From Octopus sinensis (Eukaryota), in assembly GCF_006345805.1 (NCBI RefSeq), contig NW_021832598.1, positions 43,039-107,038 of the forward strand: DNA of 64,000 nt, read 5' to 3'. Position numbers and translations under genes: made by a program. How positions within the stretch are numbered: the first letter of the stretch is position 1; each line of letters opens with the position of its first letter. This document shows, in pieces, positions 1,532 through 4,742 of the stretch. Under the pieces are notes generated by a model. That model was not told the origin of the DNA and ran no database searches. It saw only the letters and a program-made list of their open reading frames with translations.

Positions 1532-1762
1532 CATTACGCCTTCGTTGAAACTGTCGGAATAAGAGCCAGAGTAAGAGCCAGGACCCATGTCGGAACTAAG
1601 GCCAGAGGTGAAATCTGATCTCATGCCGGGTTGCATGCCGGATTGCATGCCGGTCTGCATTTCTGTCCTCATATCTGACCTCATGTCTGATCTCATGTCT
1701 GATCTCATGTCTGACCACATGTCAGGTCGCATGTCGGAAGACATGTCACAACCCATGTTCGA
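1532..1762 (-). CDS. S-crystallin coding exon 5 (Met-rich repetitive loop exon, 77 aa)
   Basis: Acceptor TCTGTTCTTTTCTAG|TCG; [16 protein letters not shown](SDMR)4[45 protein letters not shown]; donor ATG|GTAAGA. 231 nt, phase 0-0. Confidence 0.88.
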
Positions 1763-1776
1763 CTAGAAAAGAACAG

Positions 1777-1981
1777 ATAATAATAATAATAACAACAACA
1801 GCAACAACAACAACAACACCAACAACAATAATGATAATAATAATAAAAATAATATTAATAATGATAATAGTAATAATAGCGATGATGATGATGACGACGA
1901 CGACGACGACGACGACGACGGCGATGATGATGATGATGATGATGATGATGATGATGATGATGATGATGATGTTGATGATGA
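1777..1981. repeat. Compound trinucleotide microsatellite (AAT)(AAC)(GAT)(GAC)
   Basis: Directly visible; ends about 14 nt from the exon-5 acceptor. Confidence 0.95.
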
Positions 1982-2617
1982 ACCCTTTAATATATTCACT
2001 AGTCACCGTTACTAACTCTCTGTAGAATGATGCAATTGCTGAAGTTTCAATGACTGCATTTCACGACTAATAGACAGCTGCGATACCTTCACAGCATTCC
2101 ACACACTCAATTTTCATTTACGCTTGTCCATCGATTGCACATTCGTCAAAGCATTAATGAACTATGTGATCATTTGCATGACAAACTATGACTACACCTG
2201 ATAACCGTTCAGGGTTCTTTGTAGGTTTCTCAGCTTTATCTTGTACCTGGATATCATCAGCTATGGCATTCCGAGCATTCCAAGCAGAAGTTGATTGACA
2301 GCTAAACCATCTGAAGAGTGGAGTTCGTTTCTTCCTCAAGAAGAGTAAGGCCAAAATATATAATCATATCAGAGACAGGATAGCTCATGACATAACTGTT
2401 AGGCGATAACATATTAAGCACCTGCGACATCTATTGCATTATTCTGTATGTGACTGACTACCTGCTCGTAATTTTGTATAATTAGGTATCAAGCATCTGA
2501 ACAGCATGTTTAGTGCAGAAACAGATGCTGGCCGACTATGAACCTTGCTTGGTACTGAGCTGTAATAGCTGATGCGTTCTCTTTATTGCATGCTTCTGCT
2601 ATCACTTCAATGTGTGT

Positions 2618-2924
2618 TCGGTTTGTTCTATCTCGAGCCACGCCGGGCTCATAAGGGCCGGTTTCCCGGTTTCCTCGGCGTATAGATTCCCCACCTGGAC
2701 GGGACGCCGGTCTGTCGCAGGTGAGCTGCAAGATGCAGGAGGAAAGAGTGAGAGAAAGTTGTGGCGAAAGAATCAGCAGGAGTTCGTCATTACTTTCTGC
2801 CTGAGCCGCGTGGAGCTTAGGTGTTTCGCTCATAAACACACACATCACCCGGTCTGAGATTCGAACCCGCGATCCCTCGACCGCGAGTCCGCTGCTCTAA
2901 CCACTAGGCCATGTGCCTCCACAT
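2618..2924 (-). mobile_element. tRNA-derived SINE with 14-bp target-site duplication
   Basis: Head with A box TGGCCTAGTGG and B box GGTTCGAATC. ACTTCAATGTGTGT flanks it at 2604-2617 and 2925-2938. Confidence 0.9.
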
Positions 2925-4479
2925 ACTTCAATGTGTGTGTGGCTTAGTGGTCATTGTGTTTAGCTCACAATTATAATACAGAAAGTTTGATTACTAGACA
3001 GAGCAATGCGAAGTGTCTCTGAGCATTGAATTTATTTTCAAGTTGCTTTAGTCTACTCAGCTGAAAGTGTGTAGAAGCCGGGTATTACTGCAGCTGTCTC
3101 TCCCACTTCAATTGCCATATCCTGCATCTGACGTTGGGTCAAGAGTGGGATGATCGAGAGAGTCGAGAGTGTCGGGAGAGTCGGGAGAGTCAAGAGAGTC
3201 GAATGAGTGACTATGTCTATTATTGATTACATAGTCAACTAAGACAATTAGCGAAAGCATGATAAATCCTACAAGAAAATAATCGTTGACAATTAACGAC
3301 TTCCTCTTACGTCACAATTTTGCAATCCTTTAATATATATGTCTATGGCCTCGATTACTGAGCTGTTCCTCAGAATGATGATGTTGTTGTCAACGTATGT
3401 TAGCACAATTCTCGATAATAAAATTGGAACTGAGTGCTCCTTACACATCATACTGTTGCAGTGCAGTTTCAAGGGTCAACATCTATAATAGTGTTTAAAT
3501 GGGACAAACCTATCTGATGTATAGTGTAATGTAAAACATCTTCCGTATGTAGCCATTTAGCAGGACCAATGATCGAAGTAAAACCGAACTGAGCTGTACT
3601 TAAATTAAAACGATCCAATCCCTGAAAACGAAGCTAAGACTAAAGGTATAACCATGAAGCTATTAGGATTCGTTGGCAAACCCTGTCGTATGATCTATAT
3701 TGATGCAAATGTTTCAGAGCCAGATTTATAACCCACTTTCTTGTACCAGTTTCATCTTAAGGTATGAGCACACTGGGCAGTTGCCAGGGGGTCTCTCGGG
3801 TCTAGAGACCCAGTTCTAATATACGTACGTGTGACGGCTTGCTGTGATTTAATAAATATTCTAAGGCCTAGTGCAATGAATTGCCTGGGGGCCTATAATA
3901 CTGCTAAGATGACCCTGCACTGTACTATGATCGCACGAGAGGAAGGTTGTCCTAGATAGATCTGCCATAAATATATAAGTCTGTATGACACCATCGAGAA
4001 ATACCAATAACATTGGTAGTACATTAGTCAAAGTCTTTAACCTTGCATTTATCAGATTATTTGAAGTAAATTATCAAATATATTTCTTGTTTACGTTTTT
4101 CCTCTCCAGCAAAATCCTTTCCCAGCTCACAAAAGTGGACATGTTCCCACTCTGCTGCCAGTTGAAGTGAATATATGTCAACAGAGTAGCGAACAAGCCT
4201 TGCATACAGAGCAAATACGAAGCTGGTTACGCAGACTCAATAGTGTTGTTAAATGTCTTTATATATTTCATCTGATGTATAATTATCATATGCAATGTGT
4301 TTGCATGCGTATTTAAGTGTTACTGTATGTTGTTTGTACCTTAACTTTGACGTATGCGACAGAAATTATGTGAAGGTGAAATTAATTAATCGAATGTATT
4401 AAATAGGAATCAGAGAGATAGATTGATAGATAGATAAATAGATAGCTAGATATATACACAGACAGATAGACAGACAGAC

Positions 4480-4583
4480 AGATAGATAGATAGATAGATA
4501 GATAGATAGATAGATAGATAGATAGATAGATAGATAGATAGATAGATAGATAGATAGATAGATAGATAGATAGATAGATAGAT
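4480..4583. repeat. (GATA)n microsatellite
   Basis: Directly visible. Confidence 0.98.
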
Positions 4584-4688
4584 TGGCAGACAGAGAGACA
4601 AACAGAGAAATAAACAGATAGATATGTGCATAGAAGTACTCAATATCTTATTAGAGTGTGAAACAACAAAATATCTAAAAGTTCTTAC

Positions 4689-4742
4689 CATTCTACCATC
4701 AAGATCAGTGTAACGTTGACGCATGTCAGACATTCTGTCCCA
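4689..4742 (-). CDS. S-crystallin coding exon 4 (loop exon, 18 aa)
   Basis: Acceptor TTTAATTTCCTTTGCAG|TGG; WDRMSDMRQRYTDLDGRM; donor ATG|GTAAGA. 54 nt, phase 0-0. Confidence 0.88.

Follow-up and report, generated by a model that had tools for sequence, protein, structure and literature searches.

The sequence analysed here, referred to as the window, is a 64,000-nucleotide (nt) stretch of Octopus sinensis contig NW_021832598.1 (assembly GCF_006345805.1, positions 43,039 to 107,038 of the forward strand). Its minus strand carries a gene that is probably an intact S-crystallin, i.e. a sigma-class glutathione S-transferase (GST) recruited as a lens protein, with a long loop in its predicted product. 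The loop is encoded by two exons, called D and E here, the second of which is an array of tetrapeptide units. A preliminary description of the window had proposed an S-crystallin with a 95-amino-acid (aa) loop split over two exons. Both the gene call and the long-loop reading held up: the exons give an in-phase product of 300 aa with GST domains, and the 18 + 77 residues of D and E are inserted in the loop between helices α4 and α5.

Exon structure and predicted product

Exons were located by tblastn with octopus S-crystallins and their junctions were then read. Seven coding exons were recognised on the minus strand: five lie inside the window, and the last two (F and G) beyond its start on the same contig. 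Exon A (19040-18908, with the ATG at 19040) encodes 44 aa plus 1 nt and ends in a gtaagt donor. Exon B (12425-12330) encodes 32 aa plus 1 nt and has phase 1/1, and exon C (8591-8476), aligned to the crystal structure 5B7C, encodes 39 aa with helix α4 and ends in phase 0 at a gtaggt donor. Exon D (4742-4689) is a phase 0-0 cassette of 54 nt between a cag acceptor and a gtaaga donor; its 18 residues, WDRMSDMRQRYTDLDGRM, mark it as the conserved "central peptide" exon. Exon E (1762-1532) is likewise a phase 0-0 cassette, of 231 nt and 77 aa, bounded by tag and gtaaga. Both of its junctions were read directly: the upstream flank is ...ctgttcttttctag, ending in ttttctag, and the downstream flank is gtaagattc. 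Exons F (-876 to -983) and G (-2396 to -2560) encode the GST C-domain. Every splice site is AG/GT, all phases are consistent, and the C-D, D-E and E-F junctions are all in phase 0. The spliced coding sequence is 903 nt long, and its conceptual product has 300 aa.

Exons D and E together form the 95-residue insert, placed between the α4 exon (C) and the α5 exon (F). Ordinary octopus S-crystallins have a 10-aa mini-exon loop, which the insert exceeds by 85 residues. Since both exons are symmetric (phase 0-0), the reading frame survives skipping, which would leave 223 aa if E is omitted and 205 aa if D and E are both omitted. The preliminary description had suspected further loop exons off the window. 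The exons found there are the ordinary GST C-domain ones, and a scan of the C-F interval for Met-rich phase-0 cassettes returned D, E and two short chance candidates, with no further loop exon.

Pfam detected GST_N (6.4e-11) and GST_C_3 (1.7e-13) in the 300-aa product, both over the curated cut-offs, and no family in the loop at E ≤ 1. The best solved relative is the OctvuS4 S-crystallin (5B7C, E 2.6e-95), and the squid GST 1GSQ scores weaker (E 6.6e-44). The alignment to 5B7C falls into two segments (query residues 1-122 and 211-299), which places the extra residues exactly in the α4-α5 loop. In OctS4 the GST residues Phe98, Asn99, Val102 and Phe106 are replaced by Leu100, Asp101, Met104 and Gln108, and these replacements abolish GST activity (Tan et al. 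2016, PMC4976375). According to the 5B7C alignment, the corresponding positions of the window protein hold Met100, Asp101, Met104 and His108, none of which is the GST state. Tyr8 and the glutathione (GSH)-site region are kept.

A group of putative promoter motifs, read from the sequence, lies about 185 nt 5' of the ATG (19312-19218, minus strand). It consists of TATATAAG (19225-19218), TGACTAA (19249-19243), TGACATAGCA (19290-19281), which resembles the core of an antioxidant response element (ARE), and TGACGTGA (19312-19305); the TGAC motifs are AP-1/ARE-like. The group is reminiscent of the AP-1/ARE promoters reportedly present in squid S-crystallin genes.

The tetrapeptide array, its paralogs and its origin

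The minus-strand translation of exon E is stop-free and consists of 19 in-register tetrapeptides (12-nt units) and a terminal Met. It is identical to the one given in the preliminary description, whose other remarks on the exon were also borne out: 14 of the 77 residues are Met by count, and the composition drifts from DMR through GMQ to GSY. The remaining major residues are 17 Ser, 10 Asp, 9 Gly and 6 Arg. The claimed 4-residue register is unbroken in all 19 units, each of which starts with [S/T/P/C/N][D/E/G/N], a score that 100,000 residue shuffles never attained. At lag 4 there are 35 residue identities, as against 8.3 +/- 2.6 in the shuffles, and the signal recurs at lags 8 and 12; the third position of the tetrad holds 13 of the 14 Met. 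The regularity is graded along the exon, in that the strict form x-[D/E/G/N]-M-x occurs in 13 of the 19 units (1-12 and 15) and the 3' third (SDFT SGLS ... NEGV) is degenerate as an array. Tandem Repeats Finder called the 12-nt period over about 1622-1747 only, not over the whole exon. The terminus SFNEGVM is a conserved ending.

At the nucleotide level, differences between units are concentrated at codon third positions. The most variable positions among the 19 units are the wobble base of the first codon and the entire fourth codon. Neighbouring units can be nearly identical: successive comparisons across units 5-8 give 12, 11 and 11 identities of 12, units 10 and 11 share 11 of 12, and units 16 and 17 share 10 of 12.

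Simple repeats flank both loop exons. Window positions 1777-1981, about 200 nt, hold triplet arrays that are (ATA)n and (GAT)n in plus-strand sense and form, on the gene strand, a long pyrimidine-rich tract immediately 5' of the exon E acceptor. In gene sense, (GATA)41 (1334-1498) lies 34 nt 3' of the exon E donor and (AGAT)43 (4412-4583) lies about 105 nt 3' of the exon D donor. The position of the GATA/AGAT microsatellites beside the two donors is probably a coincidence in a GATA-rich genome. The one after exon E is missing at the orthologous position of Octopus bimaculoides.

Searches of the genome with exons C and F uncovered 25 and 24 copies, respectively, and the majority of these S-crystallin copies are clustered at C5:84.64-85.87 megabases (Mb). 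Each C-F interval was examined for phase-0 AG...GT cassettes. In twelve genes the loop position holds a 10-aa mini-exon, mostly FQRSxDMxxS, which equals the "11-residue long loop" of OctS4 and aligns with residues 1-10 of exon D. An 18-aa exon D followed by a long Met-rich exon E is found in exactly three genes, all with phase 0 and AG/GT sites: the window gene and two paralogs on C5. The paralog at C5:84.64 Mb (L026; C5:84,644,767-84,651,105) has FDKMSDMRQRYCDMDSRL as D and a 94-aa E in which (S/G)(D/E)MR recurs about 22 times. The one at C5:84.70 Mb (L027/L028; C5:84,700,526-84,719,000) has FDRISDMRSMYHQKFENM as D and a 49-aa, SSM-rich E that ends in YSFNEDSM.

Both paralogs match the window gene in the order C-D-E-F, in the phases and in having a Met-rich E, but differ from it in the length and repeat units of E. 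The E exon at C5:84.64 Mb is also a tetrapeptide array, in which four copies of a 24-nt unit, CGTTCCGATATG-CGCGGCGATATG, precede four copies of CGCGGTGACATG. In contrast, the E exon at C5:84.70 Mb has no clean period. In O. bimaculoides, the ortholog of the C5:84.64 Mb gene is A0A0L8G7J7 (P0001, 223 aa). A further S-crystallin-like gene lies off the window on the minus strand of the same contig, 12 kb downstream of the window gene (contig ~10,500-28,500; window -14,586 to -32,490). This neighbour is XP_029655537.1 ("S-crystallin 4-like", 220 aa). Its insert has 15 aa, KRFSSDMRGKYTENQ, and the intron at its loop position is 11 kb long.

The near-identical adjacent units, together with the 24-nt unit at C5:84.64 Mb, suggest that the arrays grew by local tandem duplication, independently in each paralog. 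In the window gene the duplicated segments would have been 12-nt units, multiplied by replication slippage or unequal exchange. This agrees with the preliminary description, which had proposed growth by 12-nt slippage: adjacent units are identical at 11-12 of 12 positions, and the paralog underwent a separate, higher-order expansion. A strong period of 4 is seen in the two octopus arrays only; it is weak in the Sepia sequence P0017 described below, and none is found in S. esculenta or squid. The strict periodicity therefore looks like a lineage-specific elaboration of an old exon.

Long-loop relatives, conservation and exon inclusion

A loop-focused search with the 300-aa product recovered P0017, a 311-aa open reading frame (ORF) on a 1,285-nt Logan RNA contig, and more relatives were found by all-against-all HMMER comparison with it. 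P0017 reads YERMSDMRTRYMDMDGRM, followed by 88 loop residues ending in AFADGRM and then by α5. P0165, a member of the P0018 cluster and also 311 aa long, comes from mRNA contigs of about 1.3 kb in 61 RNA-seq runs; of the 10 runs listed, 3 are cited in papers on the larval transcriptome of Sepia esculenta. P0022 and P0026 are additional long-loop forms. From squid, the record AAB22101.1 (P0019/P0172), a 1992 cDNA, is entered as "S-crystallin [Ommastrephes sloani, lens, partial, 304 aa]", with the organism also given as Nototodarus sloanii; its loop has about 190 residues. The squid SL18 (P27016) has 308 aa, and in the Tan et al. supplement its residues 121-213 are omitted from the alignment. 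SL18 was compared by length and insert position only (about 93 residues), not by sequence. Aligning the loop with cephalopod S-crystallins had been suggested in the preliminary description, and doing so brought up homologs of exons D and E in the cuttlefish mRNAs and the squid lens cDNA.

The D segment is WDRMSDMRQRYTDLDGRM in the window gene, YDRMSDMRSRYIDMDGRM in cuttlefish and YDQMSDMRNRYIDMDGRM in squid. The window version fits the 18-residue pattern [F/Y/W][D/E]xMSDMRxRYxD[L/M]DGRM directly after α4, and those of AAB22101.1 and the Sepia transcripts are nearly identical to it ([W/Y][D/E]xMSDMRxRYxD[L/M]DGRM). By these alignments exon D is nearly invariant across coleoids, a deeply conserved element of octopods and decapods. 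Exon E is conserved at its ends and has, between them, an array of [S/T/P]-[D/E/G]-M-[R/Q] tetrapeptides. Exon E and the Sepia loop are colinear, with 49% identity over 52 aa and common landmarks (EM.TGM, SD..SGL.S, DMGP and SG.YSDS[YF]). In AAB22101.1 and the Sepia transcripts, as in the window gene, a long low-complexity segment closes before α5 with xFx[E/D]GxM, the variants being SFNEGVM, AFADGRM, AFAEGRM and AFNEGRM. A related cuttlefish-type genomic contig (L052) contains the long segment as a single phase-0 exon of 88 codons, like exon E of the window gene. It is bounded by cag and GTAAGG, with exon F 2.8 kb and exon G 6.5 kb further downstream.

In the phylogeny of the GST core the window gene groups with the S-crystallins and is separated from the GST outgroups (94/92). 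P0001 is sister to a derived clade (98/99) that comprises the standard octopus S-crystallins; the window gene is found outside this clade, in a basal polytomy with the decapod long-loop sequences. By path length P0001 is its nearest relative, followed by the Sepia and squid long-loop proteins. This topology suggests that the D + E layout is the ancestral one for coleoid S-crystallins and that the short loop of octopus is a derived state. By sequence, the window gene appears to be the octopus counterpart of the decapod very-long-loop S-crystallins, and its two-exon loop appears to be ancient. Another decapod S-crystallin, P0043, carries a loop of (SSNM/M)n, which suggests that short-period Met-rich repeats arose more than once in the α4-α5 insert of coleoids.

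The orthologous locus of O. bimaculoides (L063; CM046605.1, ~109.51 Mb) begins inside exon E, and the comparison covers the last 147 nt of the exon. These are 94.6% identical, as against 73-82% in alignable intron blocks, 99.1% in exon F and 98.8% in exon G. There are no indels across the 12 repeat units, and both the frame and the GTAAGATTCT donor are intact. The changes are conservative and located mainly at tetrad positions 1-2, with none at Met. Exon E thus appears to be constrained as coding sequence, but far less tightly than the folded core: five of its changed codons are nonsynonymous and one is synonymous, compared with none and one in exon F and none and two in exon G. This 5:1 ratio means either that the constraint on the peptide is weak or that selection is diversifying.

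The main rival to a 300-aa product is that exon E, and perhaps D too, is a cassette mostly or always skipped in octopus, with a product of 205 or 223 aa and E as the decaying relic of an ancestral long loop. Several results lean this way and weigh against the long product. Skipping either exon keeps the frame, and the codon changes in exon E (5:1, set beside 0:3 in F and G together) would suit a relic. The O. bimaculoides P0001 model includes D and skips E. The gene called at the window gene's own O. bimaculoides ortholog (L063:1-5253) has a 215-aa product, a length that fits no D/E combination (205, 223, 282 or 300 aa). Exact look-ups of the 300-, 223- and 205-aa isoforms in the protein collection gave no match, and homology searches across 5.8 billion clusters detected no octopus protein with an E-like loop. 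A homology search with D + E + F, aimed at genomic ORFs and incomplete transcripts of other octopods, gave chance matches only, for example a Lachnospiraceae protein at E 0.02.

These searches found no octopus transcript of the window gene in any isoform, so the absence of E-containing records is uninformative about E specifically. The P0001 model in turn suggests that current octopus annotations probably miss long E exons. Against the skipped cassette, E is open in three paralogs, with strong AG/polypyrimidine acceptors and GTAAG donors. In addition, the slippage-prone repeat of the ortholog is free of indels at an identity well above that of the introns and keeps every Met position, and the exon has persisted since octopods and decapods diverged and is expressed in the latter. 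On this evidence a mostly skipped exon is unlikely. We infer the inclusion of exon E in octopus mRNA, as well as expression in the lens, from this conservation and from the decapod mRNAs.

Alternatively, the long-loop protein could be made but serve in a tissue other than the lens, such as skin optical cells or neural tissue, possibly as a GSH-binding or enzymatic protein. The cuttlefish 311-aa mRNAs do derive from whole-larva libraries, and Tyr8 and the GSH-site region are retained. However, the closest relatives of recorded provenance are lens cDNAs (AAB22101.1, "lens"), Asp101 and Met104 are inactive S-crystallin states (Tan et al. 2016), and the composition follows the high-increment crystallin trend discussed below, all of which makes such a role very improbable. 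Finally, repetitive DNA is often stop-free, and the other frames and the opposite strand are partly open here, but the idea that the 231-nt frame is a chance, non-exonic ORF in microsatellite-like DNA is hardly credible and effectively refuted by the colinear similarity to the spliced cuttlefish mRNA loop, the conservation in O. bimaculoides and the exon-end motif and phase common with the Sepia genomic exon, besides splice sites that match the consensus exactly and keep the phase of the two adjacent exons, and unit-to-unit variation that follows wobble positions.

The rest of the window contains mobile elements. A non-LTR (long terminal repeat) retrotransposon ORF of 902 aa (RVT_1, 7.5e-26) is located at 45978-48686 on the plus strand and is adjoined by a second, reverse-transcriptase-like ORF (49177-51209, plus). 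A mariner-type transposase fragment (Transposase_1, 6.4e-26) lies at 58656-59231 on the minus strand. Within the S-crystallin gene, a short ORF at 855-1338 (plus), in the E-F intron, looks retroelement-like by eye; Pfam gave no match on 1063-1338. A dispersed repeat, about 190 nt long, has one copy in each of two introns of the gene (2736-2925 and 8900-9093, 81% identical). The repeat has a tRNA-derived look; ARAGORN calls no tRNA in it and found none in its search as a whole. Rfam searches over window positions 1-20,000 returned only sub-threshold matches to TA/TG microsatellites.

Proposed function and comparison with known systems

The insert would be a flexible, disordered arm on a GST-fold subunit. 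In an AlphaFold2 model of the Sepia homolog, the predicted local distance difference test (pLDDT) score is below 50 throughout residues 110-218, i.e. the whole D + E insert; the only helical hints, of low confidence, are found where D begins and in the conserved ending of E. The arm is therefore predicted as probably disordered. The model counts for less in that it is shallow (15 sequences, mean pLDDT 55.6) and represents a cuttlefish homolog, not the octopus protein.

The refractive index increment (dn/dc) was computed as 0.197 ml/g for the loop and 0.200 ml/g for the core, with residue increments reported by Zhao et al. 2011. The D + E loop contains 10 Arg and no Lys, 14 Asp versus 2 Glu, and 18% Met. 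In crystallins, including S-crystallins, the use of Arg for Lys and Asp for Glu, as well as sulphur-containing and aromatic residues, raises dn/dc, and the mean for human proteins is 0.190 (PMC4047532). The bias of the loop in Arg/Lys and Asp/Glu matches this high-increment trend. With a Met/Arg/Asp-rich, Lys-free insert of this kind, the refractive increment would stay close to the value for the folded core.

The loop has a net charge of -6 and the core one of +5, so weak multivalent contacts between dimers are possible. In the squid lens, S-crystallin loops are proposed to link dimers in a patchy-particle gel (Cai et al. 2017, as described in PMC5703641). A patchy-gel role in octopus would be an extrapolation from squid, which likewise tempers the case. 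A refraction-neutral disordered arm that mediates weak links between dimers nevertheless seems the most likely functional reading of the insert.

It is also conceivable, if rather doubtful, that single octopus genes yield part of the loop-length polydispersity needed for a graded-index lens, by alternative inclusion of D and E combined with rapid slippage retuning of Met-centred "sticker" arrays. Alternative inclusion may give products of 205, 223, 282 and 300 aa, and the acidic loop may bind the basic GST cores of adjacent dimers. The premise is the smaller number of S-crystallin genes in octopus (about 25-27) than in decapods (77-139).

In the literature, octopus S-crystallins figure as a small group (four proteins, one crystal structure) whose loop has 11 residues. 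Work on loop-length diversity, which underlies the index gradient of the squid lens, has been confined to decapods. The window gene and its two paralogs indicate that octopus too encodes loops of about 65-110 residues, that the long exon evolves through short-period tandem expansion, and that such exons are probably missing from current octopus gene models. The locus thereby offers concrete junction peptides and exons with which the patchy-particle model of the lens could be examined in another cephalopod lineage. The Met/Asp/Arg repeat loops also form a natural series in which to see how disordered arms tune packing at a high refractive increment.

The preliminary description also likened the loop to reflectins. 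This holds for composition: reflectins are cephalopod optical proteins of low complexity, rich in Met, Asp, Arg, Tyr and Ser like the window loop. However, reflectins are free-standing proteins, whereas the array is an insert within a GST fold. Reflectin motifs have MD(x5)MD(x5)MD spacing. Exon E contains no MD dipeptide, its period is 4 and the loop has no Pfam match; no sequence relationship between the loop and reflectins was detected, and kinship was rejected.

Among GST-fold proteins, squid sigma-class GST (1GSQ) shares the fold (N-domain E 6.6e-44) and the catalytic Tyr with the window protein, but lacks an α4-α5 insert, and the window protein in turn lacks Phe98, Asn99, Val102 and Phe106. 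Standard octopus S-crystallins (OctS1-S4; 5B7C) are closer, with about 70-80% identity in the GST core, the same gene layout, Asp101 and Met104, and an intron position shared with their mini-exon. Their loop of 10-11 residues is encoded by that one mini-exon, whereas the window gene has the 18-aa D and a second exon of 77 aa.

The decapod long-loop S-crystallins are the nearest known system. They have the same sigma-GST fold and the same insert position at the α4-α5 junction, and the inserts are of similar length in the window gene (95 aa), SL18 (about 93) and Sepia (106). Records of squid S-crystallins with inserts of about 93 to about 190 residues date back to 1992, so the novelty is smaller than the preliminary description implied, and the locus reveals no new kind of system. 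The loops differ in their repeats: the Sepia ones have a weak period of 4 (p ~0.002 in P0017, not significant in P0018), and the squid loop has no period of 4 and is Met-poor (5 Met in 173 residues), in contrast to the strict Met-centred octopus array. Unlike the decapod proteins, the octopus gene has no published description or annotation that includes exon E, and it apparently adds an octopus gene, undescribed and unannotated so far, to the long-loop class already known among S-crystallins.

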